Assembly (NCBI RefSeq): GCF_001194135.2
Contig: NC_068981.1
Span: 3,279,262 to 3,343,261, forward strand
Reading direction: 5' to 3'
Source of the DNA: Octopus bimaculoides
Lineage: Eukaryota
Length of the DNA stretch: 64,000 nt
A program made the translations under genes and the position numbers. Of the stretch, positions 5,701 through 64,000 are shown piece by piece. The notes under the pieces are model-generated. The model searched no databases, had not been told where the DNA came from, and worked only from the letters and a program-made list of their open reading frames with translations. How positions within the stretch are numbered: the first letter of the stretch is position 1; every line of letters begins with the position of its first letter.

Positions 5701-8700
5701 GGCTCTCCAGACCTCAGTCAAACTGTCCAACCCATGCCAGCATGGAAAGCAGACATTAAACAATGATGATGATGAGATATTATCAGAGGTTTGGTAACAA
5801 GTCTCCTCAGATCTCAAACATCTTTCTGATGGTTCTTGTAGAAACGTAGAGATTCTGGCACTTTTCTGCAGATTGACGTCTCATTTCAAATATCCTTCAA
5901 CCTCATAAAAACAAAAGAATAGGGCAATCAAAGATTAAACAACTAAACGTTTCAATATTTCACCTAACTAGAAGATCAAATCATTCAACCAAATACTGTC
6001 AAGGTAAATTCACTCTTAATCAAGGAGTTAACATTAACAATACATGGAATGAATGAAAGGAAGGAAAAATTTCTAAAGAGATAATTGATAAAAAAATTCC
6101 TTTACCTGGAGTGATGAGCACCAATACTTTCAGACCAACAAATTCATAAAGATCTACTTTAAGTCGGTTTAACTGCTCAGCTAACTCAACAACCATTGAC
6201 ACTACACTGCCCAGACCAAGAGATTTTGCTGTTTTCACTGAAAGAGTGGCTCCTTGAGCAAGGCGGATTTCAGATGGTTTCTCTTTAGATCGGTAACAGC
6301 ACTCTAGCAGAAGAAGATCTGACCAACAATTCTGAAGTAGCAGTATTTGATCATCAGTCTGGAAAATAAAAAGAAAATCAAATATATTTGAGGGACAAAA
6401 GTCTTTAAGAAATTATGACTTCACCTTAGAAGCTTTGGAAAACTGATTTTGCATTTAAGCCATGTTCATCCCATCTGCTTTTCTGATATATTATGTATCC
6501 AGTACTGAATTACCCAGTACATATTTATTTCATGTATTTTAACCCCTTTCATATCAATCTGCCCCAAAACTGCTCCTACCTTGAGGATACAAACTTCAAA
6601 CAAATTTCATTTTAAATTATTATTCCAAATACCAGTTTTGATAATGACAGTAATACTTTGTGTTTTTAGAATCAATAAAAAAAAAATGTAGTGTATTACA
6701 AAAGAAATATGGTAACAAAAGGATTAAGGTAAGTAGGATGAGACATGAGGCGAGATCTGAATGTTATTTGTAGCAGGTAGAGTACCTCAATAGAGGCTTT
6801 CTTGACTTGAAAATTTTTGTTGCTGATAAAGATCTATCTTAGATGAAATACAACATTTGTCAGTGATACTACTGTCAAGTGACAAGTTATATCAGCTGAA
6901 GGTATCTTTAAAGGTGAATGTAGCCATTGTCAGTAGATCTAACCATCAAGATCTGAATGCCCTGGACTAGGATGTGAACTAATGACACTTTGGTTGTTTA
7001 GTCATCTGTGATTCCTTGGGATTGATGGCAGCAAAAGCTATGGACTGGTTTCTTCCACTTTCTTTATCTTATCATCTTGCTCTTTATTATTGTTGTTAGT
7101 GCTATTGAGGGTAAGAGAAGGTGATGTAAATTCAAGATTACATGTACAAGAAATAACTTTTTTCTAAAATGAGGTTTTTGCAATCGATAAATGAAACCAG
7201 TTTTAAAAAGTAGCAATGCCATGTATTAGATCTGATATCAACAATGATTGATCTATTTTCTGTTGATGAAAATGTTTCAAATTATTCTGAAATACCGAAT
7301 GGTGGATATTTTATCTATCAAGATATTTGATTCTTTTTACTCAGACCAACAACTTCTAATCATATACAGGGAAGAAGTTTGAGAGAGTATCAAATAATAC
7401 CAGATTTTATGATAATTTTTTGTTAATCTTTTTGATACCAACCTACCTCTGACTATCCCTGGTCCAAATATTACCATCCTACCAGGAACTAGCTGTATTA
7501 TCATATTCACATCTAAATTAAAACTTCCCTATCTCAAAACCATTTTTATTCCATGAATAACAACACCAGATTGCAGTTGATAAAAATCCCATTGTAATTT
7601 TATATGAGGACCCATTAAATTGTATTACAAACCCTTGAATAATATACTAATATATAGGTTACAATTATTTTACCAAACCCTTTGAAATTCTTTAGACACA
7701 GGTAGAATATTTTCATTAGAAATAATGTTACAAAATAATTAAACCTAATAGTAAATATGGTAGAAAAAAATACTTGGTTTGTTTTGTATGAGTAAATAAA
7801 AAAAAAACCCAGCAATACACTGTAAACAATAGATTAGACAAAGAAACAAAAATCACCACTGTGATACACTGTTGGATTAAAATCTTAAAATCTTCTGTCT
7901 CTCTGATACATTCTTCCAGTTTTCGTTTAACCTATTTGTTATCATATTTCTACTGAAATACACTACTTTTGCTTCACTTAATTTCAAAACTAATGTTGGA
8001 TTTAGTAAAATAACTGTTGATATTAAGCTACTGTTTGGAACATGAAATTTTGATGGGAAGGTTTTTTTAGATTGTTTTAGAAAAGGAACTTTTGTATCAT
8101 AGATCCAGAATGGTCTCGGGTGGGTTGTTATCAAAAGGGTTAATAGGAAGACCTGACATTATTTCACAGGCTTCTTACTTTGTCAGAAATACAATGTCAA
8201 TTTTTTCAGCTCCTCTCTTTCTCTGTCTGACTCAATAGACAAACAAACCAATGAAGGAGCTGTTACATGTTTACCAAATCTGAAAGAAATAGTAATTTAA
8301 CTTCCCCATATCACATCCAACTAGGTCTTAAAAGAGGGGATGAAGGAAGGACACACTGAACAATGTTGTCCAGATATACAAAAAGACAAGGTGGTTACAG
8401 CTAGAACACCTCTGATCTACTCAGAGCTGACGCAGGGCTAAACAATAACAACAAAAAACATTCATATCAAGTTATGATTGTTTTTGAAATGCGAACTAAA
8501 AGGTAAAATTACGCAGTCACTGTTATAGACAAAAAAAAAAAATACAGCAATACTCACAGAAATTGATGCAAACTGAGAAAGATTCCTGGCCCAGCGTACA
8601 ATTTTGTAAAGACGATCTTCAGTGATTTGCATCAGAGAAGTGTAACTTGTTGGGTCTTCCAATAGAATTTGAGTGTTTGGTTCATCATCACAGAGTAATG

Positions 8701-11700
8701 ATTCTAAATTCATAATGTCTGTAAGAATCTGTGGAACAAAAGGTTTTTTGTCATCAGAACTACTGTTACGGCTTAGTATAGCAACAAGCTGACTAGCCTT
8801 GTTCTGACCAACTTTCTGTATTGCCATATTTGGAATGGTCACTGACCGTTGGGAATGCTGCTGTTGTTGATGATGACTGTTGGGTTTCACTGTGGTCAAT
8901 TTCTGAAGTTTCTGTTTGTCAACAATATCACGTGTACGACCATGCGGTGAACAGCCATCATATGAACTTCTACCACCACGTGTACGATCAAGACGGATAG
9001 CTAGAAAGTAAATGGAAAGTAGGAGAGAAGAAGTTAATAAAGGCATGCAAAATGCAATCAGATGAAACAACAAGTGCAACTCTGAATTCTTCGTCTAATT
9101 ACCCATTCTAATATCATCATAATAATTGTAACTAATTAAGAAATCCTAATTCTCATAGAAGGATTTTGTCACACTCGTGACATCTCAGCATGGTTTATAT
9201 GGAAGCTAGTTATAGATAGATGAACTATTTTAAGGAGCCAGAAGCAAGAAGACTTTGTATCCATAATTTGAAATGATAGCATTTTACTTGCTGATAAATT
9301 AACTTGAATTCAGTGAGTGCAATGCAGTCTAATTGATATAAATTTGCTCATTTTATTTGGAGATTAGATTTTGCTGAGATTGTTATTAAAGAAAATAAGT
9401 TTCATGTGTGTGTGCATGTTGGATTGTTGGTATGGCTGTTGTATGTGTTGCACTGTCTGAAGCCACCTTTCTGCCAGTTCTTTGACCTCCCCCCACACTG
9501 ATACCAGTTCTTATCTTCCAAGGCAAAGAATCCTTTCACTGAGCCTTGGGACTTCCATTAGAGATCTGTTAATCAGTCTGCAGAACAATTCTGCTTCCTC
9601 TTTACCAACCTCCAAAGATTTTGGTTTAACCAGGTTTCCTCCTACCATCTACCAACATTCAAGCTACACATCTTGTTACTCTCTGAAACCCAAATTTCTC
9701 ATGCTCTCTCTCTAAGCCATCTTTCTTGGTCAGGTTATGCTCCCTAGTCTAAACTTAGTTCGGAAAGGTAATATCTTTTTATGCGTGGAACCAACTACCC
9801 CATCACATCACTCCTCTCACCAGAGTGTCACCATAAAAGACTATCTGTTTATTCTCTTATCTTTTCTAATTTATCCACTGCCCCCATCACTCCATCCCTA
9901 TCTCCAGTAGTTATTCAACTATAATTTCTCTAGCATTAAGTACATCCATTACATCTTAACTTTCTCTGAAGTTATTCTTAGTAACTGCATTGAACTTGTC
10001 TTGGCTCTCACACTTCTCTCTAACACTGACATTAATTACTAGTACATTATTTGCTATTCTGAACTATCAACACCAGTTAGCATTCATAGTTACTTGTATT
10101 CCCCAATTGAAGTATACTGTCCAAAACAGACTTTTCATCTTCTTCATTGTAAACCAGTTCATTCTACTTATATTGTTTATATTTAATGATTATTAATGCA
10201 GACCATCACTACTTTCCCCAGATCCTACCGTTTACATTGACCTCAGACCAACTCAATTTTACTAAAACAATCTGAACTCCATTGTTGCACTAAACCCAGA
10301 CAGTGGCTATCAAATGTGATGTCATAATTTTAACCCATTTTTGTTTTTATTTTCTTTTAGAAAAATTCTAAGTAGTTTTTGGTGAATTTTACTACTTTAT
10401 AATTTTTTGAACTTCACTAAGAAAATAATTGTTTAGAGCCACATACTTCAATTGCAATCAAAACAACTTAACCTATTTTAGTTTTCATTATCTGTACAAT
10501 TACTGTAACAAAACCTAATTAGTCAAATGTAATCTAATGGATTGATCAACGAGTGTGAGTCAACTTTTTCTGATTATGTCATGAGACATTCAACCAATAC
10601 AGGGTCAAATTGAACTGAATGTTTGATGGAACAATTTGTTAATTTGCAATTCACAAAAACTGAAATTCTTCTTACCTTCCAATAACATACCACTTTCAAG
10701 ACATTTATTAAACCGACAAGCAGGACATTTCTTTCGATTGTAGACATTTATCTCACAACAGTTTTTCTGATGACACTGATATACTTTTTTGTTCTGTACA
10801 GTACGCTTGAAGAACCCTTTACAACTTTCACAAGAGAAGATACCATAATGGTAACCTAAATAAACAAACACAAAACAAAAATAAAAAGAATAAATTTTAG
10901 AACAAAAGTTTTTTCTAAAAGTTTTTTTTTTTTTATAGTTTAGTCATTGAAGAATCAACAATAACCATAACCTCCAAAACTGAGGAAAGAAAGGCAGTAG
11001 ATGGGTCATTTTTTGGAGTCTTGGCCCAAATATCTAAACACAATAAATTCAACAAAAGACTCCCAAGGTGGTGGAATTAACTAAGTAATCTTTCGCATTT
11101 AGATTACTTTGTCAGATAAAATGCTTGTTAATGCACGATTAATTCAAAACAACATGAATAATCTTGTAGCTTTGAGATTTCAATGATGTGATTGTTTATT
11201 TCTAGAATGACATCATAGGGTAGGTGTGAGAAGACACATCTGGCCAGTTTGAATATAAAACAGGAGGAATATTTTGGCTGGATATGACTGGTTTAAATAC
11301 AACACATCATCATTATCATCATCATTTAACGTAAATACATTAAAATTATATCAAAACATCATAACAGTGGTGATAAGGATTTGAACTACACGCAATATTA
11401 AAAATCCTCTTACTTTGTAAAAGTGATGACAAGGATTATAATTTCAGGCACTTCACAAAAGTGGAGGCAAGGTTTCGAATTTCACGCAGTGAAAAATAAT
11501 ATAAAATCGCCCATTTCATAAAAGTGAGACATTCCAAGTTCTTAGCATGGAAGAACTGTTAGCCTCTGCGGTATAGCAACAATAACAGCAAACTCAGCAG
11601 TTTTTAGAATTATTGCTGCTGTCAAAGAACATGTCAGGTTCATTTTTGGCGGATGGAGTAACCAATTCGATTGGGTAATTTGTTTATAATCCGGAAGAAA

Positions 11701-14700
11701 GGATCATGTTTCCAGCATACTTTAGAAAGTATGGGGAAATATTTAAGGAAGAATGTAAAAGTTGGACAGAGGAAAAGAAGATAAGGCTTCTTTTATGAAA
11801 ATTAGCACTGGCACATCATGAAAAATATTGTAATTACATCTTGCCAGGGAATCTGTCAGAAATTTGTTTCAAGGAAACAATTAGCTTATTAGAGATATCC
11901 AGCAAAAGGATTTCATTATTCAACATTCACTGGGAATGCCAGAATTTGAAAAAAAAATGAAACAGATGACTTTGTTATGTATGCAGGAATCATAAACAAA
12001 GAATGTGAAAAATTCAAGCCAAGCGAGTTAACCCCAGACATGTTCAAATATTTAATCTTTGTAAAGGGATGGGGAAATACGAGCTGGAATATTAACAAAA
12101 TTAGAGCAAGATACTAAATTAACTTTACAAACAGTGGCGGAAGAATACCAAAGGATAATCTATGACAAGACACAGAAAAAACTGAAAGAGACGATGTAAA
12201 TATACAGGCATGTCGACCTATAACAAACAAGGAGAAAATAAAACAATCAAGACTCAAATCATGCTATGGGTGTGGAAAAATACACTTTAAAAGGGATTGT
12301 CTTTTTAATAAAAATTATTTTGGTTGTAGCAAAACAGGACATAAGAATTCACATTGTTGGTTAAAGAAAAAAAGTCAAAAAAGAAAATTTGTATCTGTAA
12401 AAATAACGTAAATATGAATTTGCAATTGGATACAGGAAGTGATATCTTGATAATTAACATTGGTACATGGCAAAAGATTGGAAGGCCTACTTTCAAGAAA
12501 ACGTCAAAAATTGCTCGTGGTATTTCAGGAAAGCAAGTACGATTTTTAGGTGAAATGACAACAGAAGTGACATTTCGTGGGAAGATGCTGAAAGCTAAAG
12601 TTTATGTATCAGAAAATACTATAAACCTGTTTGGGACAAACTAGATTGAGATATTTGATTTATGGAATCTACCCATAAAAACATTCTCTAATAATGTAAA
12701 TGGTCCATACGCCAGTTCAAATAAGGTGTCGGAGAATTTAAAATTTGAAATGGAAATAAAAAATATACTCTGCAACATAGTGCATGAACTACCGGTCACA
12801 TTAAACGAATTAAAAATTAAAGCCAAGAAAGATATATTATTTACATTTGACGGATATTTGTCCTCATCTTGTTCTTTCGGCTGATATACCCTCCAGCCTT
12901 CATCAGGTGTCTTGGCAAAATTTCAAACCTGGCTTCTCATTCCTAAGGTATTTTTTGATGTTATTATTATTATTATTGTTCAGGTCACTGCTTGGAATTG
13001 AACTCGGAATCTTTGGGTTAGTAGCCTGCGCTCTTAACCACTATGCCATATGCCATGATGAAGGCTGGATGAGGACAAATATCTATTCAAATGTACATAA
13101 TTCCTCATCTCTTAAATATAGAACTGCAAGAAAGATATGTTTAAAGAAAAAAACTTATGTAGCTGAGCGTAACACTGATTTGAAATGCTAGGTATGCTCA
13201 GAGGGTTGTAGTACCTGATTCTTCACAAAATCAAATGTTGAAAGAATTTCACGTTGGACATCCAGGAATTGGGAGGATGAAGGCACTTATGAGAAGCTAC
13301 ATTTACTGGCTGAACATGGATCAGGATATTGGAAAAACTGGTGAAAGCCTGCATGGGTTGTGTCCTGGCAGTAAAGGCACCACCTGTAAAAATTCAACCT
13401 TAGCCCAACACTGACGTACCTTGGTCTAGATTGCATATAGATTTTGCAGGGCCACTAAATGGTGTGTATTATCTAGTAGTTGTAGATAGTCACACAAAAT
13501 GGCCGGAAATATGTGAATGCAGAAAGCCAACCTCTAAAATAACAATAGAATTTTAGAATTTACATGGTTGCAAAGCAAACTTCTTAACCACATAGCCATA
13601 TATCTGTGTGAGTGTGTGTGCACATGCGCAATGTACGTGAATGTTGCTATTTGTCAGTTTGAGTGAAATGGTTGATGTTGACATTCTGTGTCAGCATTAT
13701 GAACAGTTGCTCAGTGCTTTTGAAGACTTGTGGAATATGAAGATTCCTTTGCTCAGGCAATGGTTGGCAACAGGAAGAGCATCCAACCATAAGATTCTAC
13801 CTCAAAAATCAATTCTTCCCAACATGGAAAGATGGGTATTAAATGAATAAATTCCTTAATTTCATTCATTTCACTTTCGGAGTGTTTGGCATTAAGAAGG
13901 GCATCCAGTTGTAGAAACCTTGCCAAATCAGATTGGAGCCTGGTGCAGCCTCCTGGCTTACCAATTCTCAGTCAAAGGACGTTAAATGATGATGATGATG
14001 ATGATGATTGAGGTTAATATCTAGATATAGTTATTGTCAGGCCTTTCTATCATCAAAGGTGTTCCAGCTATGACCAGACAGTTTTGAAAATCAGACTGTT
14101 TCTGTTCCTCTTGTGTTCAACAATTTACACTGGTAACTTGATATAGCACACACACACACGTGTGTGCTCTCACTAATACAACTTCTCCTTAGAAAATATA
14201 TGATTTTTAGTCGCCCAATATTTTAAAAATAAAATAAAAATGAGTAAACATTAGTTTTAATATCATTTAAATCAAAACACGGTTACATAAAACTGAAAAA
14301 ATATTTTGTTATCAAGTGATTAAATTACAAAACAATCTAAATTTCAAACTAATGTCTATCGTTTAATGAAATCTATAGTTTTCATTTTCAAGGCTGAATA
14401 TTTTCTATTTATCGCAGATATTGTGGCAAAATTCCAAATCAAAAAGTATTAGTAAATAAATCTTAGTTGTTCTTTAGCACAGATTAAAGGTTTCATAATT
14501 CTAAATAAATCTTGAGAAAATAATCACCGTTATCATGATTATATATGTATGTATACATAATTCTCTCACTTAGATTTATCTTGTACCTTGAGGGTACACT
14601 CACCATTTGTCTCTCTCGTTCCAGCTGAGGAAGCCATGTATCTCCTCTTCAGTAAGACATCTGTTCTGTCACTATATCATACTTTCACCTCTCTCAATAC

Positions 14701-17339
14701 TACACACATTCAGATGAGGAGGGTCTTGTCCTGTGAGTTACTAGTGCTGGTGCCATGAAAAATAAAAGCACTCAGTACACCCTGTAAAGTGGTTGGCATC
14801 AGGAGGGGCACCCAGCTGTAGAAACATGTTAAAGTTGATACTGGAGCTCTGACTCTTCATTCCAGTCAAACTGTCTAACCCACACCAGCATGGAAAATGG
14901 ACATTAAACACTGATGAATGATGATATATATAATCATCATGATTATAATGTGTGTATATTCATCAACATTATAATGCCTACTTTTCCATGCTTGCATGAG
15001 GAGATGAGAGTACACTGGAGCAGAATTCTTTTATGGTCAGATGCCCTTTCTGTCATCAATCCTATTTATTTCCAAGTAAGGTAATCTTTCAGTCTATCAA
15101 GTATTGATTTTTGGTAGACTGCAGGCAAAAATTGCAGTCAGGAGACCATTGTTTACAACCCAGTGAAAGCAAGGAAAATATGAACACACACACACATGAT
15201 GGGCTTCTTTCAGTTTATGGTTACCAAACCCACACAAGGCTTTCATTGGCCTGGTGGAGCTATAGTGGGACTGAACTATAAGCCATGTGGCTGACAAGCC
15301 AACTTTGTTTTTCCACACAACTATGCCTGTGCTTAGAATGGAATTCTGAAATATCTGTGGAATCTTTGGTTTTTATTCAAGGATATTTCTCCAATAATAA
15401 AAAGTGAAGATTTCAATTGTTTCCATGGTTGAAATACAAACATTGTCATCCATATAATTATATAATTAATATACAAAAATATGTAATAAATTTTAATGAG
15501 ATGGACAAATCACTTTATCAAGAATTGAAAGATGAAAATCAAAAATACTTCTTGTTTTAAATATGACATAGACAAGATAGAGAAAAGAAATTATATACAC
15601 AAATATTAATTCCTTTCAAGTGTTGGGCCTCATGGAGGCAAAGTGGCTGAGTTCCTTTTGAGTGTTGAGCCTCACAGAGGCAATGATCGAGACCTTTGGC
15701 ATTATGTCGTGCTTGAGAAGAAGACCCATCAAGCTGAGCAAAATTGCAGTCATGACAAATATCGGTGTGACGCAAATTGGTACCTGTGCTGGCAGCACGT
15801 AAAAGCACTCCAGTGTCAAGCAAATGGCATCTGTGCCTGTGGCACGTAAAAGCATCCAATACACTCTCAGAATGGTTGCATTAAGAAGGGCATTCAGCCA
15901 TAGAAAGCCATGCCAAATCAGTCTGATGATGATGATGATGATGATGACACAGAAACATATATAATCAAACCTTCAAGCACACACAGAGATGTGCATACAT
16001 CTAAACATATTTTATTGAGTGCATTTTAGTGTGACACCAGCACTAGAAAAGTTGCATTTTACCCTTACAAGAATAAAGAGCTTACTATATGTTGTCTCCA
16101 TTCCATTGCCAATCACTTTGAAGAGTGTATTGAGTGCATTTTATTCTGGAACCAGCACTAGAAAGGTTACCCATTTTCTTTACAAGACTAAGGAGTTCTA
16201 GTTTACTTGACTGACAAGGAAAATAAACATGCTCTACTTTATTTCATAGCTGAGGCGTAGCAATAGGAACATTTATGACATCAATCTCACTGGTTTTGGA
16301 GGGCCTGTGATGACTTTGAACTCCACTGTTTTCCCCAGAACCAAAACACTTAAAAACAAATGTAAAAAATTTATACAAAAATATATCATCTTAGTTGTGT
16401 GATCATAGGGAAAAAAAATGTTAAAAAAGAAAAGTGAAACTCACCAGATACTTTGTCACTACAGATTGGACAATTTTCTTTGTCTATGGCATCTTTAGAT
16501 GGAGAATTGCTATTGGTCACTGAAGAAACTGGAATTTTTAAAGATACAATTTCTTCTGGATGAATATAGACTGCATGAATGTTAGAGGCAGACTGTGAGG
16601 TACTGTTGCTGTTTTCCTCATCTCCTCTGCCACTTTCATCTTCTTCAAGACGAGTATACTTCAATGGAGAAGACTGTGATTCCTGATCGCTTGTTGGAGG
16701 TAAATGTCTTTTCTTGGAGGCATCTACAATGCCGCTGTCAGAGTCTGAGACTATAACATCATTATCAGGAGATGGCACTGAAGAACTGTCTCGATTGAAA
16801 CACACTATAACCTCTTCATGTTCACCACACTTCACTCCATCAATCTTAATGGTTTGATTTAATTCAAAAACCAGATTCTTGCTTTTATTCTCATTGTTGT
16901 TTATTGCTGTAAATACATTTACAACATTTGGGTCACTCTGTGAGAATAACACTGAATTTGAATTGGGTTTCACATTTGCTCCCTGATCAAGTTTTAGTTT
17001 AAGCATTGCCTTTAGATCTGGAGTGGTCTCCGTGACATTTTCTGTGATGCCATTAGAATCCATTTGAACTTGACTGATGAGAGATTCTGTGGGTTGGTGT
17101 AGCCCATGTAGAATAGGGAGTATTTTCTTCTCAGAATTTTGGTTTGCATTGACCTGCAAGATATTAGGCTTAATATCCTTCGATTTGCATTCCTGTAATC
17201 TGAATCCACTGGTGTCGCGGTGTTTTTCATGAGAATTATTGTTTAGACAATTTTCAGAATTCACCTCAGAAGATGTAAGGGTATGTGAAATAACCTGCAG
17301 CAAGACTGGTGAGATGCCAACCTCACCTGTGCAGCTCAT
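2386..17339 (-). CDS. Hr39: NR5-family nuclear receptor, HR39/NR5B-like. Spliced CDS complement(join(2386..2663,6106..6358,8558..9000,10676..10855,16445..17339)), 682 aa
   Basis: Joined exons give the C4 zinc-finger [13 protein letters not shown]|[59 protein letters not shown]|[14 protein letters not shown], then an LBD ending in AF-2-like LLYELL. All four introns are GT-AG with matching phases (1,1,0,1); 895+180+443+253+278=2049 nt. The P-box ESCKG and FTZ-F1 box mark NR5. IFSC, RKKCPAC and DRTRGGRS match HR39/NR5B rather than NR5A (LLTC, RKRCPYC, DRMRGGRN). The start codon is the first in-exon ATG and is not proven. Confidence 0.92.
2720..2763. repeat. (AAT)n microsatellite
   Basis: Read directly from the sequence. 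Confidence 0.95.
3443..4004 (+). mobile_element. Three tandem family A SINE copies
   Basis: Repeated GTTCAAATTC..GAGGTCAACTTT..TCATCC core at about 3450, 3675 and 3868. Confidence 0.75.
4831..5776 (+). mobile_element. 5'-truncated RTE-clade LINE (decayed RT C-terminus, 3'UTR, (GAT)n tail)
   Basis: [15 protein letters not shown] and [12 protein letters not shown] motifs in broken frames. Tandem-repeat 3'UTR and ATGATGATG tail. Homologous to 20546-21720. Confidence 0.85.
6106..6358 (-). CDS. Hr39: NR5B-like coding exon 4: LBD signature and central helices
   Basis: Acceptor ttttccag|ACT at 6358. Reads [24 protein letters not shown]...[19 protein letters not shown]. Donor CCA G|gtaaag. In frame with ORF 6020..6238. 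Confidence 0.94.
8558..9000 (-). CDS. Hr39: NR5B-like coding exon 3: FTZ-F1 box, hinge and LBD helices 1-3
   Basis: Within ORF 8462..9079. Acceptor ttctag|CT ATC; donor TCT|gtgagt (phase 0). Encodes [14 protein letters not shown] and [17 protein letters not shown]. Confidence 0.94.
10676..10855 (-). CDS. Hr39: NR5B-like coding exon 2: DNA-binding domain core
   Basis: Within ORF 10605..10871. Acceptor tttag|GT TAC; donor GAA G|gtaag. Encodes [23 protein letters not shown]...CPACRFNKC. Confidence 0.96.
12836..13054 (-). mobile_element. tRNA-headed SINE with hammerhead core (helix III and cleavage site deleted)
   Basis: Head GGCATATGGCATAGTGG (box A) ... GTTCAATTCC (box B), an (AAT)n linker, then GACAC-CTGATGA-AGGCTG-GAGGGTATAT-CAGCC-GAAA joined directly to GAACAAG. 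Confidence 0.8.
13055..13126 (+). mobile_element. Inverted, internally deleted 3'-end copy of the hammerhead SINE, abutting the 5' end of the full copy
   Basis: ATGATGAAGGCTGG|ATGAGGACAAATATC...CCTCATCTCTTAAATATAGAACTG is the reverse complement of the body at 63622-63740, with the ribozyme centre missing. Confidence 0.75.
15600..15948 (+). mobile_element. RTE-type 3' fragment with (GAT)n tail
   Basis: Partial similarity to the RTE 3' region (GCCTCACAGAGGCAATGA..., TAAAAGCACCCA.., (GAT)n). Confidence 0.65.
16445..17339 (-). CDS. Hr39: NR5B-like coding exon 1: long S/D/E/N-rich N-terminal A/B domain and start of zinc finger 1 ([10 protein letters not shown])
   Basis: Within ORF 16386..17438. 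Acceptor ctttttcttcag|G with the exon starting at 17341, ATG at 17339, and donor TCTG|gtgagt at 16445/16444 (phase 1). Confidence 0.9.
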
Positions 17340-17572
17340 TCCTGAAGAAAAAGAAACAAAGAATGGATGGTAAACATCTTCACCTGTTTCAAAGAAAATA
17401 TAATGAAAATAATGCAAAATCACAAAATGTAAAAACAAAGGAATTCTTTGGATATTTCTTGATTAGAAACCATTAAAAAATCATAATATAAAATTAAAAA
17501 TCACAGACTTTAAGAAAACAGTCTTAAACTTCCATTTTATATGATATAAGATATTAGAATATAACAGAAAGT

Positions 17573-17960
17573 TGTTGTTGTTGGCACTCCGTCGCTTACG
17601 ACGTCGAGGGTTCCAGTTGATCCGATCAATGGAACAGCCTGCACGTGAAATTAACGTGCAAATGGCTGAGCACTCCACAGACACGTGTACCCTTAACGTA
17701 GTTCTCGGGGATATTCAGCGTGACACAGTGTGACAAGGCTGGCCCTGTGAAATACAGGTACAACAGAAACAGGAAGAAAGAGTGAGAGAAAGTCTTGGTG
17801 GAAGAGTACAGCAAGGTTCGCCACCATCCCCTGCCGGAGCCTCGTGGAGCCTTAGGTGTTTTCTCTCAATAAACACTCACAACGCCCGGTCTGGGAATCG
17901 AAACCGCGATCCTAAGACTGCGAGTCCGCTGCCCTAACCACTGGGCCATTGCGCCTCCAC
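17573..17960 (-). mobile_element. Young tRNA-derived SINE (family E) with (CAA)n tail and 12-bp TSD
   Basis: tRNA-like head GTGGAGGCGCAATGGCCCAGTGGTTAGG...GGTTTCGATTCC. TSD ATAACAGAAAGT at 17561-17572 and 17961-17972. CpGs retained. Confidence 0.88.
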
Positions 17961-20545: not shown

Positions 20546-21720
20546 TCATCATTATCATCATCATTGTTTAATGTCCGCTTTCTATGCTTGCATGGGTTGC
20601 ACGATTTGATTGAGGAGTGGCGAACCAGATGGCTGCACCAGGCTCCAATCTAATCTCAGAGTTTCTACAGCTGGATGTCCTTCCTAACGCCAACCACTCT
20701 GAGAGTGTAGCGGGTGCTTTTACGTGCCACCGGCATGAGGGCCAATCAGGCGCTACTGGCAACGGCCATGCTCAAATGGTGTTTTTTACGTGCCACCTGC
20801 ACAGGAGCCAGTCCAGCGGCACTGACAACAACCTTGCTCGAATGTTTTTTCACATGCCACCGGTACAAGTTCCAGTAAAGCGATGCTGGTAGCGAACACT
20901 CTCAAATGGTGCTATTTACGTGCCACCAGCATGGAAGCCAGACAGCTGCTCTGGCAATGATCACGCTCGGACGGTGCTGTTAGCACTCCACTGGCATGGG
21001 TGCCAGTCATCCAATTTCGTTCAGTTATGATTTCGATTTCACTTGCCCCAACAGGTCTTCGCAAGCAGAGTTTAGTGTCCAATGAAGTAAAGGTACGCAT
21101 AAGTGGCTACACCCCTGGCAAAGGCCATGGGTTATGGTCTCACTTGGTTTGCTGGGTTTTCTCACGCACAGCATATTTCCAAAGGTCTCGGTCACTAGTC
21201 ATTGACTCGGTGAGGCCTAATGTTCAAAGGTCATGCTTCACCACCTCACCCCAGGTTTTTTCCTGGCTCTACCTCTTCCACAGTTCCCCTCAACTGCTAG
21301 GGTGTGGCACTTTTTCACACAGCTATCCTCATCCATTCTCACTACATGACCATACCAGCGCAAGCATTTCTCTTGCACAAAGACGATTGTGTTGTGATGC
21401 TGCTTAGGTCCAACTTTTCTCTCAAGGTACTTACACTCTGTCGAGTATGCACACTGACATTACACATCCATCGGAGCATACTGGCTTCATTCCTTACGAG
21501 CTTACGCATGTCCTCAGCAGTCACGGCCCATGTTTCACTGCCATATAGTATGGCTGTTCGTACACATGTGTCATACAGTCTGCCTTTTACTTTGAGTGAG
21601 AGGCCCTTTGTCACCAGCAGAGGTAAGAGCCCTCTGAACTTTGCCCAGGTTATTCTTATTCTAGCAGCTACACTTTTAGTGCACCCTCCCCCGCTACTGA
21701 CTTGGTCACCTAGGTAACGG
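20546..21720 (-). mobile_element. 5'-truncated RTE-clade LINE
   Basis: ORF 21342..21614 contains LYDTCVRTAILYGSETWAVT...MLRWMC, the RTE C-terminal signature. Same 3'UTR repeats and (GAT)n tail. Confidence 0.88.
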
Positions 21721-22048
21721 AAGATATCAACTACTTCTAGTTGTTCAATAAGTCATTATTACATAAATAAATACAGAAACCTTGTGCGTCTCTTCACACT
21801 CAAACAAGGTTTCTTTCTTTTCTTTATTTATTTATGTATTTACTTATTGAATGACATAATAGGCAAACTATTTGAAAAATATGACTTTTCGTTGTGACAG
21901 TGTTATGGTTTTAAAACAATCCAGAGGAAAATGTAATTCTCATCAATTATATAAGCTCATGGTTCTTCAATCTGTAACTAGTTTGTTAAGTGCCAATGCA
22001 CGAAACTCTCAACCCTTGAGTCACTCTGTTGCTTCTGCTAAACACACA

Positions 22049-22529: not shown

Positions 22530-23549
22530 TCTCATGGATTTACTGCAATGTAATAAACATGTTGAAGTTTAATGGTCTCTTTATCTGTAGATCTATTTTT
22601 TCATATTTATGCATCAATTCTCTATTTGGGAATATATATCATAATTAAATTCAGATACTTAGTTATCAGCCAATTGTTTTATGGAAAAAAAAAATATTAG
22701 TAGCAGATGATAAAGTGAACAGTTAAAGAGTTTTGTGGCTTTTCCATCTTGGATTCATGCTTGCAAAATGTTTAACTTAATGTTTAAAAATAATATAACG
22801 TATCTATAATGCATTATGTCTTCAGTTTTGTTCCATAGTTAAAGAAGGATATGCATGTAAACTGAAGCACGATATTATATTAGAGAGAACATAATTCAGT
22901 AAAGTCTAAATAAGCATGACAATTTGAATAAAAGATCAATATTTCTTCTTGAAGTATTAGTGAAAAACAACAACTTCCAAATAAAATATAAAATCTGGCT
23001 AAATAAGCAAAAATCCTCAAAAATTATGTTAGAAATATTTTAAATGAAAGATTTGAATAAAAGATTTATATATATTTTTTTCATTTGCATGAAAAAAGAA
23101 AATCTCTGATACTGACATACACTCACATGCATGTATGTAGTCATTCACATACATACACATGAAACTACAACCATCCAAATGCTCACATAGACATACGAAT
23201 GCATTCCTCCACAAACACACAGGTGTGCATTTATCTACAAATGTGCACATGGATACATTCATTCATTCACAAACACACAAATGCATCTACTCATGAACAC
23301 ACACACACACACACAGAGTAATATATCCACTCATAAATAAATGCATACACAAATGCATCAACTCATAAACAGACATGGGTAAATTATACATTTCCTTTTT
23401 ACAATATTTTGACTAAGTTTCTAATCCAAAATAATAATGTGAATGGATATGGTCAATTAACTTTACAATTAATGACTTTAGTAAATGCTTAGTTTTACTT
23501 CAATCACAGGAGATCAAGTAATAAACCGAATTACTCAGAAATCTTAAAA

Positions 23550-23822
23550 TTACAATGGATGAATAGGTGTCCTCATCTTGTTTGTTGTTATCACAATGTT
23601 TCAGCTGATGTACTCTCCAGCCTTCATCAGGTGTTCTGGTGGAGTTTCAAACCCAACCTTTATTTGACTAATGGGGTACTCTGTTCTCATTTCTTAGGTA
23701 TTGGGTATTTTTCTGATGTTATTTTTTGTTGATATTATTTCTCAAGTCCCTGCCTGGGAGTGAACTCAGAATTCGAGAGTCAGTAGCCTGTGCTCTTATC
23801 CACTATGCTATATGCTCGTAGG
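23550..23822 (-). mobile_element. Older tRNA-headed hammerhead SINE copy with a degenerate ribozyme
   Basis: Minus strand AACAC-CTGATGA-AGGCTG-GAGAGTACAT-CAGCT-GAA-ACAT-T-GTGAT at 23590-23635, showing CpG decay in helices II and III. tRNA-like head at about 23750-23822. Confidence 0.75.
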
Positions 23823-25763
23823 CAATTGTAGAATGAATTTTTGGGCTTATAAATTATTTTTTTAATTCTAATTTTGTCAATATTTAAGCAGATTAATTAA
23901 TTATTATTTAAAACAGATTAATTTAATTTATTCTATTGAAGAATTTCTTGCAATCTTAGAGTGTATACTTTTCTGCTAGAATTGGCATTTACCTGAAGTC
24001 ATTACAAACTATTTGTTTAATATTGCTTAGAAAATGTGAACTTTTACTATTACACCTGCTGCTTCATTTTGAAGCTGAAGTTTTACCTAAAGGAAAAGCG
24101 ATTTCCCATGGTTTTCATGGATGGAGTCATTCAAAACACAAAAAAAGGAGAAATTCATTGTTTTATCTTATGCTTTTAGTTGTGGTTTGGAGGGATCTGA
24201 ACATCAAAGCTGTTGGAAATCACTCATTCTTTGGGTAAAATTTCACCTTCAAAGTGATATGGGTGTAATTGTAAAAATTTACTCAAAATGCCTTGTTGTA
24301 TTTAGTTACATCCTTTCATGTTGTTCTGAGTTCAAATCCCACTGAGGTCCACTGTGCCTTTGATTCCATTAGGTTCACTCTGTCCTTCCAGTTGAAGACG
24401 ATAAAGACTGATATTTAATTGATCACTGAATGAATATTGCTGTTTAGTACTCAGGTGGTCATTAAGTAGACTTTTGGTAAAAGCTTTCAAACCATGACCA
24501 TCCCATCTATTTTCAGAAAATATGGTCCTGTTTTCTTTTTGTTTGTTACTTCTAGCAGGCTAAAGGATCATATGGAGAGTTCCTACTCCCACTCTTTCAT
24601 CTCTGGCTCTGTAAGCAGAAGATTCATTTGGTGGTTGCTATAGTTAGTATGTCAAATCTAGATCCCTGCCTAGCTGTGATTAGTAATTTTGTTGACAGTT
24701 GCCACACCTCTGCTTTGTAGTCATATTCCTTTGAACTATATTCTATCCTGAACGGGTTGTATGGAATCGTGTTTATACTTGTGTGGAGATTATCCAGAAA
24801 TCTTATAGTATTTATATATTTCAATGAAATATATAAAAGGCTACAACAGTTGAAGGTGCAATTTATTTTCAAGGATCCACCTAGCATAAAGAAAATCTTA
24901 CAGTTCATGGAAACCACAAAAAAAAAAAAGAAAAGATCAACACCAAAAACATTTAACTGTTCTTTAACTCTGTTTTCTTCTTTCTAGTGTTAGTGCAGAG
25001 TGCAGCAGAAAAATCTCCCACATTTTGCATAACCATGTGGTGTGACACTAATGAAGTGAGGCAAGTAATAATAGTGTCTTCATAGAGCTAATGCTGTACA
25101 ATTATTGTTTTTTGGCTACCATTATGGTTTGCAGCAGTGAACACTGTGCATTTGCAGTTGAAACAGTAGTTTTTGCTGCATTAATATTAGTTTCTTTTTC
25201 ATCAGGGTTATTGTATATCTTCCTTAACCTGTTGTGAATTACCAGCTTTACACAGATGTTTAAATTGATTAGATAAATAAGTATGAGAAACTAAAAAGTT
25301 ATCCCATTCACATATACTGCTATATTTATCATCTCACCAATATTCTCCTCTTGCACCTTAAACTGAAAGTCCAGGAAATGAACCCATGATTTTATGATTG
25401 TGAGCTGAACACCATAACCATTTGGCCACACACCTTTTCATACAAGCAGAGTAAATATGTGAAGTACAGATTTGAAGTACAGATATTTTCAAATAGCTGC
25501 AGCACTCAATAATTTGAGGCTTGTTTTACCTTTGTTATTAATAGCAACATAACAAAATATCATCATCACCATCATCATTTAGTATCTGTTTTCCATGCTG
25601 GCATGGGTTGGACGGTTTGACTGGAACTGCTAAGACAGAGAGCTGCACCAGGCTCCAGTCTGATTTTGGCTTGGTTTTTACAGCTGAATGTCCTTCCTGA
25701 CACCACCACCAAGAATGTAGTGGGTGCCTTTTACGTATCATCGGCACTAAAACATAAGGTACA

Positions 25764-29427: not shown

Positions 29428-30930
29428 CAAATTTTATCATTATAAAATTTTAGAAGTTTCTTTTACTATACCATGTCTCTGTCAGTCAAGGATGACCATG
29501 CATATATATTATGTGCAAAGACCTGGGCATGATTTTTTTGAGAAAGATTGGCAGGTGCCCACACATAAAAATCTTTCTTTTGTGTGCCACCAATGTTTAT
29601 CCAAGGGAAAAACCATTGTCTTAGGGCCAATACAGCTTAGCACCAGTGTTGTTGCTGTCAGAATGCAAAGTGGAACAGATGCAGCAAAGCATTTTGTCTC
29701 ACTTTCTGACAGCTCCACCACCCCATCGTTTTGTATTGGTACCTTTTCATGAACTTCAAAAGGAAGAAAGACAAAGTTATCCTTGGAGGCACTTAAACTC
29801 TGAGAGGTGCAGAAAATTCAGAACATGTACCAAGAAGCATTCTCTCCAATGTTCCAATGAAACCACTTTGCCATCTTTTTAAATCATCTCTGTTCATTAC
29901 AAACAATATTTAGAAAATTTAAGCTCGTTTGCAAAATAAACTGAGAGAGTCTGTGGTAAATTTTAACTATTAAACTCACCTTACCTTAAAAGGTTAGGGT
30001 TAGAGTAAGAATAATCATTGAAAGCATGCATGCAATATGAAGCTATTCTGGCACTCAAGTTATTCAACAGTTAATGTGTATTTCTAGATGGAGACTATTT
30101 GTCTGCCATGTCTAGCAAGTCATGGTACTACATACTGATATTTCCTTTCCCTAAGCTATCAGCTGCAAGGATGGGGTTTATCTAAAGAACAAGTGATTTC
30201 CAGTTTTGATGGTCAGATTTGTTTAAAATGTACAAAAATCCATAAGGAAAAGCATTTCAACTTTAAAGCAGGTGCCATGTAAAAAGCACCCCGTACCTCT
30301 GTAAAGTGGTTGGTGTTAGGAAGGGCATCCAGCCATAGAAATCATGCCAAAACAGACAATGGAGCCTGGTGCAGCCCTTGGTCTTACCAGCTCCTGTCAA
30401 ACTGTCCAACCCATGCCAGTATGGGAAATTGACATTAAATGATAATGATGGGTATAAAAGTAAAAATTTACTGAAATTACCTTCTCTTACGCAATTTCAA
30501 AATGTCAAAGTTATATTTTCTAAACTATGAAGTGAGCAAGATAAGAAATGTCAGTGGAAGCCAGTAAATTATATAATTAATGTCAACGTATTAAAAATCT
30601 AATTAATATAATTGAGTAGAGACAGATAATGAATACTGTTGTTTCACCCTCAGGTAAGCACTGACCAATCAAACATGACCACAAATAGTCCAGATGTGAC
30701 AATGCTGCATTGATAAGGGTGAACTTGGCCATCCTGTCTTTTATTTTTCAGGCAGTACATTTAGGACGTTATTCAGTGTCCTTTTTTTATGATGACTGAA
30801 TGTGATTTGATGGAAACTTGGCAGCTATTTCTTGGAGGTTGATGATTACCACATTATGAGATCTCTAGGCAGCTGGAGTGGAGAAGTGAGATGGAGTGGG
30901 TTGAATTTACTGTAGGGTGTATGACTGATT

Positions 30931-31290
30931 GTGGCACTCTATTGGTTATGACGACAAGGGTTCCAGTTGATCCGATCAATGGAACAGCCTGCTCATGAAA
31001 TTAATGTGCAAGTGGCCGAGCACTCCACAGACACGTGTACCCTTAACGTAGTTCTCAAGAGAGATTCAGCATGACAAGGCTAGCCTCTTTGAAATACAGG
31101 TAGGTACAACAGAAACAAGAAGAAAGAGTGAGAGAAAGCAGGGTTTGCCACCAGCCCCTGCTGGAACCTCGTGGAGTTTCAGGTGTTTTCGCTCAATAAA
31201 CACTCACAACGCCCAGTCTGGGAATATGAAATTGCAATCCTACAACCGCGAATCTACTGCCCTAACCACTGGGCCATTGCACCTCCACCA
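30931..31290 (-). mobile_element. tRNA-derived SINE (family E), older copy
   Basis: Colinear with 17573-17960, with CpG decay and small indels. Confidence 0.85.
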
Positions 31291-40690: not shown

Positions 40691-40918
40691 GGCAGCAAGC
40701 TGGCAGAGTGGTTAGCACACCGGGCAAAATGCTTAGCGATATTTCGACTGTCTTTACGGTCTGAGTTCAAATTCCGCCGAGGTTGACTTTACCTTTCATC
40801 CTTTCGGGGTCAATAAATTAAGTACCAGTTACGCACTGGGGTTGATGTAATTGACTTAATCCCTTTGTCCTTGTTTGTCCCCTCTATGTTTAGCCCCTTG
40901 TGGGCAATAAAGAAATAA
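40691..40918 (+). mobile_element. tRNA-derived SINE (family A) nested in a family B SINE
   Basis: GGCAGCAAGCTGGCAGAG...GTTCAAATTCCGCCGAGG...AAAGAAATAA. TSD GAAAC(T/G)GAAAGAA at 40677-40689 and 40919-40931. Confidence 0.88.
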
Positions 40919-50033: not shown

Positions 50034-50052
50034 TTAAATTACAGTGAAGGTA

Positions 50053-50592
50053 ATCATCATCATCATCATTTAACGTCCACTTTCCATGATAGCATGGGTT
50101 GGACGATTTGACTGAGGACTGGCGAACCAGATGGCTGCACCAGGCTCCAGTCTGATCTGGCAGAGTTTCTACAGCTGGATGCCCTTCCTAACGCCAACCA
50201 CTCTGAGAGTGTAGTGGGTGCTTTTACATGCCACCAGCACGAGGGCCAGTCAAGCGGTACTGGCAATGGCCACGGTCAAATGGTGTTTTTTATGTACCAC
50301 CTGCACAAGAACCAGTCCAGTGGCATTGGCAATGACCTCGCTCAAATGCTTTTTTCGTGCCACCGGCACAAGTGCCAGAAAGGCAACGCTGGTAACAATC
50401 ACGCTCAAATGGTGCTTTTCACGTGCCACCAGTGCAGAAGCCAGACAGCTGCTCTGGCAATGATCACGCTCGGATGGTGCTATTAGTGCTCCACTGGCAC
50501 GGGTGCCAGTCATTGAATTTGGTTCAATTTCGATTTCACTTGCCCCAACAGGTCTTCGCAAGCAGAGTTTAGTGTCCAATGAAGGAAAGGTT
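50053..50592 (-). mobile_element. RTE LINE 3'UTR fragment
   Basis: Near-identical to 20546-21090. (CAT)n tail on the + strand. Confidence 0.85.
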
Positions 50593-55884: not shown

Positions 55885-56281
55885 GCTTAAGAAAACCCGG
55901 TAAGTCAAGTGAGATCGTAGTCGTGGCCATTTAAAAGCACCCTTCATTCATTGGCCGATATGCCATGCTTGTGAAAACCTGTCGAACTGAGTGAAATTGT
56001 AGGTGTAGCTGATGCCAGTGCCGCCTGACTGGTACTTGTGCCAGTGACATGTAAAAAGCACCATTCAAGTGTGGCTGATGCCAATGCCGCCTGAATGGCA
56101 CCCATGCCGGTGGCACATAAAAAGCACGATTCGAGCATTAAGAAGGGCATCCAACTGTAGAAACCTTGCCAAATCAGATTGGAGCCTGCTGCATCCTCCT
56201 GGCTCACCAGTCCTCAGTCAAACCGTCCAACCTATGCCAGCACGGAAAGCAGATGTTAAATGACAACGATAATGATGATGA
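55885..56281 (+). mobile_element. RTE LINE 3'UTR fragment
   Basis: Same 3'UTR units and (GAT)n tail as 4831-5776. Confidence 0.8.
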
Positions 56282-62914: not shown

Positions 62915-63388
62915 TCCGCCTAATTGGCACTCGTGCCGTGGAACGTTAAAAGCACATCTGAGCATGATTGTTGCCAGGGCCATAGATTGGCTCCCATGCA
63001 GGTAGCACATAAAAAGCACCATTCAAGCATGATTGTTGCCAGCGTTGCCTTACCAGCACATATGCTGGTGACATGTGACAAACAACATTTGAGCGTGGTT
63101 GTTGCCAGTGCCGCCGGACTGGCTCCCGTGCAGGTAGCACGTAAAAAACACCTTTTAAGCATAGTCATTGCCAGAACTGCCTGACTGGCCCTCGTGCCGA
63201 TGGCACATAAAAGCACCCACTACACTCTCGGAGTGGTTGGCTGGCATTAGGAAGGGCATCAGCTATAGAAACTTTGCCAGATCAGATTGAACCTGGTGCA
63301 GCCTTCTGGCTCACCAATCCTCAGTCAAACCATCCAACCCATGCCAGCATGGAAAGCGAGCATTAAACGACGATGATGATGATGATGA
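62915..63388 (+). mobile_element. RTE LINE 3'UTR fragment
   Basis: Tandem units with TAAAAAGCAC, then AGGAAGGGCATC...CCCATGCCAGCATGGAAAG...(GAT)n. Confidence 0.85.
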
Positions 63389-63621
63389 CTAGCACACCTG
63401 CCACAAGCTGTTGTCAAGACATGCTTGGGCTAAATATTACCATATTAGTGTTACCTGTCATATGTGAATAGGGGAAACTTTGGAAGTATATTTTTGCCAC
63501 TCTTGGTAATATCAGGAATTATGTCATGCATACAAAGAATTAGAACTGAATTTTTATCAAATTTCTTGGTGTTTATACAAAATGATGAAATGAATACTAA
63601 TTTTAAGAGGAAAAATATTTA

Positions 63622-63796
63622 CAGTTCTATATTTGAGAGATGAGGAATTATGTGCATTATTTACATTTGACGGATATTTGTCCTCATCTTGTTTGTTGTT
63701 AACACAACGTTTCGGCTGATGTACTCTCCAGCCTTCATCAGGTGTCCTGGGGATATTTCAAACCTGGGTTCTCATTCCAAAGGTATTTTTCCAATA
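63622..63796 (-). mobile_element. Hammerhead-bearing SINE-like element, 3' part; the 5' side is interrupted by an RTE tail
   Basis: Same body as 12836-13054 and 23550-23822. Terminus ...AAATATAGAACTG is shared with the copy at 13055-13126. Confidence 0.75.
63701..63746 (-). ncRNA. Minimal type I hammerhead ribozyme motif (intact copy)
   Basis: Minus strand GACAC-CUGAUGA-A-GGCUG-GAGAGUACAU-CAGCC-GAA-ACGU-U-GUGUU. Helix I is GACAC/GUGUU, helix II is GGCUG/CAGCC, and helix III is the loopless palindrome ACGU. Core CUGAUGA and GAAA are present. Predicted cleavage is 3' of U17 (position 63706). Activity untested. Confidence 0.78.
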
Positions 63797-64000
63797 TTCA
63801 TCATCATCATCATCATCGTTTAACGTCCGCCTTCCATGCTAGCATGGGTTGGACGATTTGACTGAGGACTGGTGAAACCGGATGGCAACACCAGGCTCCA
63901 GTCTGATTTGGCAGAGTTTCTACAGCTGGATGCCCTTCCTAACGCCAACCACTCAGAGAGTGTAGTGGGTGCTTTTACGTGTCACCCGCACAAAAACGGC
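63797..64000 (-). mobile_element. RTE LINE 3' end (runs off the window), inserted into the hammerhead SINE
   Basis: (CAT)n CGTTTAACGTCCGC... matches 20546 and 50053. Confidence 0.85.

Follow-up and report, generated by a model that had tools for sequence, protein, structure and literature searches.

A complete minimal hammerhead ribozyme motif was found on the minus strand at positions 63701-63746 of a 64,000-nt stretch of Octopus bimaculoides DNA (contig NC_068981.1; the whole stretch, 64 kb in length, is referred to below as the window). Judged from its letters and predicted fold, the motif has the architecture of the minimal hammerhead ribozymes (min-HHRs) of Penelope-like elements (PLEs), and its cleavage is a prediction. 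The likely explanation is that a PLE-type min-HHR is carried here by a dead copy of a non-autonomous retroposon family that resembles a short interspersed element (SINE) and was mobilised by PLEs.

The hammerhead motif

Read directly from 63746 to 63701 on the minus strand, the motif runs GACAC CTGATGA A GGCTG GAGAGTACAT CAGCC GAA ACGT T GTGTT. The conserved hammerhead core is complete, with the CUGANGA box, the GAAA box and an NUH cleavage triplet all in place (Table 1). The initial annotation of this DNA had reported the same letters, a full core, helices I and II of 5 bp each and a palindromic helix III without a loop, and all of these were confirmed exactly.

The min-HHRs of PLEs have neither a helix III nor a loop 3. 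Their positions 15.2-16.2 form a palindrome, through which helix III is built in trans by a pair of copies, and they carry a nucleotide that separates position 9 from position 10.1, a conserved G10.1-C11.1 pair and a helix I of 4-5 bp (Cervera & de la Pena 2014, PMC4209133). All of these published sequence traits are present in the octopus motif, and the earlier assignment to the minimal type I hammerheads of the Penelope kind was thereby borne out. The extra A after A9 is present as well, but it had been taken for a tolerated oddity and is instead a hallmark of the PLE min-HHR class (PMC4209133).

Both strands of the window were searched with a strict descriptor. It asked for at least 4 bp in each of helices I and II, the CUGANGA and GAAA boxes, no more than one extra base, a helix III that is palindromic, an NUH triplet and the returning strand of helix I. 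The only match was at 63702-63745 on the minus strand, and 300 dinucleotide-preserving shuffles gave a mean of 0.0033 matches per window. The same single site was returned by a looser descriptor, for which 0.22 matches were expected.

Folding of the 46-mer gave a minimum free energy (MFE) of -13.2 kcal/mol (z = -2.39), with helices I and II kept in the MFE structure. Pair probabilities in the ensemble were 0.70-0.99 for helix I and approximately 1.0 for helix II. An alternative CUGAUG/CAUCAG hairpin, capable of sequestering the core, reached a probability of about 0.001 in the same ensemble and was dismissed as negligible.

Copies of the repeat family and their insertions

Within the window, the family is represented by three sense copies and one inverted fragment. 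The 33-nt hammerhead core recurs on the minus strand at 23598-23630 with one mismatch and at 12874-12906 with three, whereas 0 recurrences were expected. Homology to the copy bearing the intact motif was found by BLAST to span 12836-12955 and 23550-23653, and the module common to the copies measures about 170-190 nt (BLAST, MAFFT). Every copy is single and dispersed, and no head-to-tail tandem repeats of hammerhead units were found in the window. The module contains an antisense open frame of 43 aa, with which a search of the protein collection returned no candidates.

Among these copies, only the one at 63622-63792 has an intact ribozyme. Its homology to the others begins abruptly at GGAAAAATACC (63792) and ends in ...ATAGAACTG / ...GAACTG (63622), and it lacks a head and hence the box A/B promoter. 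It was inserted about 5 nt downstream of a (GAT)n tail, and the 7/8 duplication around it is statistically weak in AT-rich DNA. This 171-nt, 5'-truncated, promoter-less sequence beside a microsatellite is a dead copy. Its ribozyme owes its intact appearance to the small number of mutations in the copy, as the preserved CpGs show, and not to selection on the locus.

The two other sense copies possess a head of about 75 nt followed by an AT-rich linker, both located 5' of the module. The junction from head through linker to module, AATAACATCA...AAAAATACC, is common to both in the alignment, and the flanks of the two loci are unrelated. A perfect box A (TRGCNNAGTGG) occurs in both heads, with six matches in the window against 0.56 expected. 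The combined pattern TRGCNNAGTGG-N(25-45)-RGTTCRANNCC was exact in the first headed copy (12836-13054) and was found with one box B mismatch in the older one (23545-23817); shuffles gave 0 and 0.01, respectively. The heads may resemble a tRNA-Thr-type sequence, a tentative lead.

Further box A matches were located at 17894-17948, 29863-29873 and 31266-31276 on the minus strand and at 40701-40711 on the plus strand, the first of them with a near-consensus box B at tRNA spacing. None of these sites precedes a hammerhead module, and they are probably the heads of other tRNA-derived SINE families.

The alignment showed that the first headed copy has lost 15 nt, CGTTGTGTTAACAAC, and with them helix III, the cleavage site and helix I's 3' strand; the sense arm of this copy ends in ...AAATGTAAATAAT, without the 34-nt extension. 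In the older headed copy, two CpG transitions, CAGCC>CAGCT (CCG>CTG) and ACGT>ACAT (ACG>ACA), are accompanied by the change GTGTT>GTGAT. As a consequence, a G10.1-U11.1 pair is formed, the palindrome is lost (ACAU) and helix I acquires one mismatch.

At the first headed copy, a single, clear target duplication of 12-15 bp encloses head, linker, module and an inverted arm (12836-13126). On the sense (minus) strand of the element the order is an inverted, truncated tail arm (13126-13055), then head, linker and module, and three pairs of inverted arms were detected in this unit by the repeat search. The inverted fragment skips from the middle of helix II directly to the tail. Since one duplication surrounds the whole composite, the latter must have been retrotransposed as a unit at least once. 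For the older headed copy, a target duplication or a short inverted arm was sought by eye; what was seen was unconvincing, and none is claimed.

Fragments of the polyprotein of a long terminal repeat (LTR) retroelement lie on both sides of the 12836-13126 insertion, at 12345-12641 and 13184-13411, both on the plus strand. They include an aspartyl-protease-like stretch with DTGS and a match to Integrase_H2C2 (E = 4e-10), with a gag-like zinc-knuckle stretch just upstream. An older, rearranged LTR element was therefore the landing site of the headed retroposon.

Insertions of PLEs are distinguished by 5' truncation, an inverted and 5'-truncated copy at the 5' end, a tail of 30-40 bp at one end and a bias towards microsatellites (Craig et al. 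2021, PMC8557442). The 12836-13126 insertion displays exactly this syndrome, and the head-less copy fits it as well. The source of the head-less copy may be the RNA of a headed SINE or the 3' terminus of an autonomous PLE, the two origins being equally possible.

Table 1. Features of the hammerhead motif, of the copies of its repeat family and of their insertion sites (window coordinates)
Feature	Position	Strand	Details
Intact minimal type I hammerhead motif	63701-63746	-	Sequence reading, descriptor, folding
Helix I	63746-63742 with 63705-63701	-	5 bp, one G-U; open-ended
CUGAUGA box (C3-A9)	63741-63735	-	
Extra A	63734	-	Unpaired, between A9 and G10.1
Helix II	63733-63729 with 63718-63714	-	5 bp (6 counting a G-U); opens with G10.1-C11.1
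Loop 2	63728-63719	-	10 nt
GAA (G12-A14)	63713-63711	-	With A15.1, 63713-63710
Palindromic ACGU (A15.1-C15.2-G16.2-U16.1)	63710-63707	-	No loop; helix III only in trans
U17	63706	-	Last base of the GUU (NUH) triplet
Predicted cut	63706/63705	-	3' of U17
Head-less, 5'-truncated copy (retroposon 3' module including the hammerhead)	63622-63792	-	171 nt; homology to other copies
Tail stem-loop	63639-63688	-	GATGAGGA (63688-63681) with TCCTCATC (63646-63639); kept in inverted arm
34-nt terminal extension, GCACATAATTCCTCATCTCTCAAATATAGAACTG	63622-63655	-	Also in inverted arm (13092-13126); absent from sense arms of both headed copies
Putative target duplication, 5' copy, TGAATATT	63793-63800	-	Abuts element; read from sequence
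Putative target duplication, 3' copy, TAAATATT	63614-63621	-	Abuts element; 7/8 identical to 5' copy
(GAT)n microsatellite tail of unrelated abundant SINE-like repeat	63798-63817	-	
First headed copy	12836-13054	-	Box A 13038-13048, box B 12994-13004, (AAT)n 12961-12977
Hammerhead remnant of first headed copy	12874-12911	-	15-nt deletion
Inverted, truncated, internally deleted arm of module	13055-13126	+	TGATGAAGGCTGGA/TGAGGAC...ATAGAACTG; adjoins 5' end of first headed copy; carries 34-nt extension
Left target-site duplication, CAAGAAAGATAT(ATT)	12824-12838	+	Repeat search
Right target-site duplication	13127-13141	+	14/15 identical to left copy
Older headed copy	23545-23817	-	Box A 23800-23810, box B (1 mismatch) 23756-23766
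Hammerhead remnant of older headed copy	23590-23636	-	Decayed

Origin and possible role of the hammerhead-bearing module

From its sequence features, the family is probably PLE-dependent and SINE-like. In the mechanism proposed here, the head would supply transcription by RNA polymerase III (Pol III). The sense strand of the element has no run of T4+ before its 3' end outside mutated positions and the consensus has no internal T4+ run; Pol III could therefore read through. The tail, comprising the min-HHR and the stem-loop at 63688-63639, would be derived from a PLE and recognised by the PLE reverse transcriptase (RT) and GIY-YIG endonuclease. Such use of the tail would explain the inverted arm, the one-sided extension of 34 nt and the microsatellite-adjacent target. 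The composite itself may go back to the insertion of a PLE tail into the (AAT)n tail of a tRNA-derived SINE, and the position of the head-less copy beside (GAT)n would represent the same kind of event.

Less confidence is attached to the steps that concern cleavage. Activity of the monomer is not expected, because the trans helix III is weak and the in vitro cleavage of published min-HHRs is poor and confined to dimers (PMC4209133). The hammerhead of a source copy might thus be inactive as a monomer and cut after U17 only once a double hammerhead has formed from two units paired by their ACGU palindromes. Such pairing could take place within one transcript, tandem or read-through, or between two RNA molecules, and cleavage would then trim multimeric RNA, as has been proposed for PLEs and for the small hammerhead elements known as retrozymes. 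In a single Pol III SINE transcript, the hammerhead would probably be a weakly active passenger of the PLE-derived tail, a picture that is likewise held with low confidence.

A number of results weigh against this interpretation, and the first group concerns the link to PLEs. This link rests on architecture and not on homology, as no PLE open reading frame (ORF) or pseudo-LTR (pLTR) was found in the window. The search for these covered the ORFs and stop-free stretches of the window, with Pfam applied to selected fragments only; it yielded pieces of a nuclear receptor and of LTR retroelements, but no PLE RT. Pattern scans of metagenome and viral collections returned no further copies of the family. 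A scan of prokaryotic genomes gave two 20-mer matches in bacteria, which were judged to be chance because their flanks are unrelated, and likewise no further copy.

The second group concerns the ribozyme. The Rfam hammerhead models (Hammerhead_1, HH9, HH10, II, 3) gave no match over the window at the gathering score, and no hammerhead family was matched at E<=10 on the 151-nt slice 63650-63800. The comparison with Rfam that the initial annotation had proposed was thus negative for window and site alike; the failure is presumably due to the motif having no helix III hairpin, which would make it a limitation of the models and not a disproof. The trans helix III formed by ACGU/ACGU has 4 bp and a duplex energy of about -1.7 kcal/mol. 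No tandem or nearby intact hammerhead partner was found in the window, the other copies being defective and 40-51 kb away, and none of the four copies (0/4) starts or ends at the predicted cut at 63706/63705. Nothing in these copies points to the self-processing, defined ends or circular RNA that the initial annotation had considered.

The third group concerns the headed copies, of which the window holds only two, both with broken hammerheads. At default, 90% and 80% thresholds, no tRNA was called in the heads by ARAGORN, and the Rfam tRNA model gave no match to them at E<=10. A "tRNA-Leu" that ARAGORN reported at the 70% threshold was discarded as noise, as the window yields 194 calls at that threshold. 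Because both programs reject the heads as tRNAs, the latter are best read as Pol III-promoter-like and tRNA-derived in appearance, with a decayed cloverleaf. Identity among the sense copies (n = 3) was 0.89-0.95 in the hammerhead, 0.74-0.82 upstream and 0.72-0.97 downstream, which is a slight edge only for the core and helices over the flanks. At most, this pattern suggests neutral decay of a motif-bearing consensus, and three copies cannot carry a claim of conservation or covariation.

Several statements of the initial annotation were modified by these findings. The same body does follow Pol III heads and AT-rich linkers at two other loci, with boxes A and B in both heads and (AAT)n in the first headed copy, but the hammerheads there are dead. 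The intact ribozyme, which had been placed inside a tRNA-headed SINE, belongs instead to the head-less copy. The description of the head as tRNA-like holds for the spacing of boxes A and B, although not for the tRNA searches. As for the capture of a Penelope ribozyme by a SINE, the insertion anatomy fits an origin from PLEs, but the intact copy could equally descend from a SINE or from an autonomous PLE's 3' end.

An alternative that we regard as unlikely is that no true SINE is involved. The module would then be the 5'-truncated 3' end of an autonomous PLE, that is, a pLTR fragment, which, given the microsatellite preference of PLEs, ends up in (AAT)n or (GAT)n at the tail of an unrelated tRNA-derived SINE, so that heads and modules are accidental neighbours. 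In agreement with this, the sole intact copy has no head and directly follows (GAT)n, the tail of another SINE-like repeat that is abundant, and a microsatellite-like linker separates head and module in the first headed copy. The microsatellite bias of PLEs is documented (PMC8557442), and most min-HHRs, of which there are thousands per animal genome, are dispersed singles ascribed to truncated PLEs (PMC4209133). However, the same head and junction occur at two independent loci with unrelated flanks, and one target duplication surrounds the entire unit of head, linker, module and inverted arm. Accidental adjacency may nevertheless describe the first origin of the composite.

It is rather improbable that the motif is a PLE-derived relic and not a working self-cleaver, its conserved fold (helices I and II and the tail hairpin) serving, if anything, the recognition of the RNA by the PLE reverse transcriptase, or simply hitch-hiking. 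The low in vitro activity of published min-HHRs, for which the authors allow functions other than cleavage (PMC4209133), agrees with such a role, and the role of the min-HHR is called unknown in PMC7761336. The marginal trans helix III, the missing tandem partner in the window and the absence of copies ending at the cut site point in the same direction. On the other hand, the catalytic boxes, the NUH site and the G10.1-C11.1 pair are all kept in the least-mutated copy, and dimeric cleavage of PLE-associated minimal hammerheads has been reported, as cited in PMC7761336 and PMC6765202.

A chance look-alike in AT-rich repetitive DNA, with no ribozyme ancestry, is hardly credible: although the Rfam hammerhead models do not match, and 0.003 matches per 64 kb would still give about a hundred across a multi-gigabase genome, the extra base after A9, the G10.1-C11.1 pair and the repeat context were not required by the descriptor and are present all the same, and the motif lies within a repeat family with PLE-like insertion anatomy.

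Beyond the favoured reading of a PLE-type min-HHR in a dead copy of a PLE-mobilised, SINE-like family, a more far-reaching proposal can be formulated, which we consider doubtful. According to it, a Pol III-driven SINE that arose from a PLE tail and the (AAT)n tail of a tRNA-derived SINE is mobilised by PLEs, and its master copies keep an active dimeric hammerhead that trims or circularises the SINE RNA. If this were true, tRNA-SINEs, PLEs and retrozymes, which have so far been treated apart, would be joined, and PLEs would gain a classical SINE partner. A composite family that proved real and numerous would clearly exemplify a Pol III SINE that parasitises PLEs and would show a route from PLE microsatellite targeting to new SINEs. 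If real, the composite would also offer a compact natural construct (promoter, linker, min-HHR and tail hairpin) for probing the role of the min-HHR in PLE retrotransposition. The 63701 locus itself is a dead fragment for which no host function is suggested.

Surrounding sequences and comparison with known systems

The (GAT)n tail next to the head-less copy belongs to an abundant SINE-like repeat that is present in at least 14 copies in the 64 kb, contains the block GGTTGGCGTTAGGAAGGGCATCCAGCTGTAGAAA and ends in (GAT)n. Its copies were located at 63831-64000 (minus strand) and beyond, 50082-50240, 20580-20735, 5588-5747, 63194-63354, 25591-25753, 56135-56247, 30268-30424 and 13872-13976, among others. 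A full copy near 50040-50420 has internal tandem sub-repeats of about 60 nt upstream. Its only connection with the hammerhead module is the adjacency at 63798-63830.

Exons of a nuclear hormone receptor gene lie on the minus strand at 2389-2781, 6023-6412, 8462-9079, 10608-10943 and 16389-17462. The exon at 10608-10943 matches zf-C4 (E = 3e-24), and those at 6023-6412 and 2389-2781 match Hormone_recep. The N-terminal exon of 350 aa ends within the first half of the zinc finger, and its database search returned a single relative, an ORF of 26% identity on ENA contig ctg83191 (ERZ25071447, 58 kb). Positions 11796-11944 of that contig align with 10709-10857 of the window (150 bp, 75% identical, zinc-finger exon). 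This exon-like stretch is all that the two sequences have in common, and no repeat copies are shared. The contig seems to be eukaryotic (host) DNA that bears an orthologue of the receptor gene and sits in a metagenome assembly.

Two stop-free stretches, at 21345-21752 (minus; …GSETWAVT…MLRWMCNV…) and 5017-5241 (plus), were recognised by eye as candidate C-terminal regions of the reverse transcriptase of long interspersed elements, with no Pfam match at E<=0.01. Runs of N (750 in total, assembly gaps) occur at about 18.9-19.4 kb, 22.3 kb and 36.2 kb, mostly beside (TA)n or (TATC)-like repeats. A nuclear-receptor gene together with many repeats is consistent with a repeat-rich metazoan genome.

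Searches of the literature, the coverage of which was incomplete, retrieved no description of a hammerhead in a cephalopod SINE or of a tRNA-headed SINE with a PLE tail. The literature searched also contained nothing specific on hammerheads or retrozymes in octopus or other cephalopods, and no match to the exact sequences of the motif or family. A study of repeats in Octopus vulgaris describes abundant SINEs and active Penelope families and mentions no ribozymes (PMC13282606). Nevertheless, the novelty is lower than the initial annotation had assumed, as SINE-like Pol III hammerhead elements, dispersed PLE min-HHRs and PLE-dependent retrozymes have all been described (PMC6765202, PMC7761336, bioRxiv 10.64898/2026.07.22.740005).

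The closest resemblance is to the min-HHRs of PLEs, with which the octopus motif shares the type I topology, the absence of loop-loop contacts, the occurrence as dispersed singles, at times with another motif nearby in the opposite orientation, and the expectation that it works only as a dimer. Published min-HHRs are sometimes paired on opposite strands at distances of 100-700 bp (PMC4209133); min-HHR work by Lunse et al. (2017) is cited in PMC7761336. The octopus module is a 171-nt fragment and not part of the pLTR of an element encoding RT and GIY-YIG, no PLE ORF or pLTR having been found in the window; most published min-HHRs are dispersed singles too. Helix II has 5-6 bp in the octopus motif, compared with the 6-8 bp quoted for the schistosome and Drosophila min-HHR families. 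In addition, two members of the octopus family carry a Pol III-type head, and no such head is described in the PMC4209133 work.

The Sm-alpha and Sj-alpha SINE-like retroposons of Schistosoma likewise combine a Pol III promoter and a type I hammerhead in a short non-coding unit. For them, cleavage was proposed to release units from multimeric transcripts (Ferbeyre et al. 1998 and Laha et al. 2000, as related in PMC6765202 and PMC8490949). In Sm-alpha, however, the type I hammerhead is canonical, includes a helix III hairpin and acts in cis or in trans, and the element is often arranged in tandem, whereas the octopus motif is of the loop-less PLE type and its copies are dispersed singles. The octopus family further differs in having the promoter 5' of the ribozyme with a microsatellite-like linker, a comparison made by description.

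Metazoan non-LTR retrozymes are comparable in being small, non-coding and non-autonomous hammerhead elements that are thought to be mobilised by PLEs, occur as dispersed solo monomers and have been likened to SINEs. It has been argued that they derive from PLEs and are not autonomous (Cervera & de la Pena 2020, as cited in PMC7761336; Li et al. 2026, bioRxiv 10.64898/2026.07.22.740005). Tandem repeats that give rise to circular RNAs are the defining feature of retrozymes, for which no conserved promoter module has been described; in contrast, the octopus window is without a tandem array.

With the non-autonomous PLE derivatives described in PMC8557442, the octopus family shares 5' truncation, an inverted and truncated 5' copy, an extension of 30-40 bp at one end and adjacency to microsatellites. 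In such derivatives, similarity to the autonomous element is expected at the 3' end (PMC8557442). The non-autonomous Chlamys elements of the same study differ in being algal and in having no tRNA-like head. The octopus family is thus credible but fairly ordinary among kinds of elements that have already been described.

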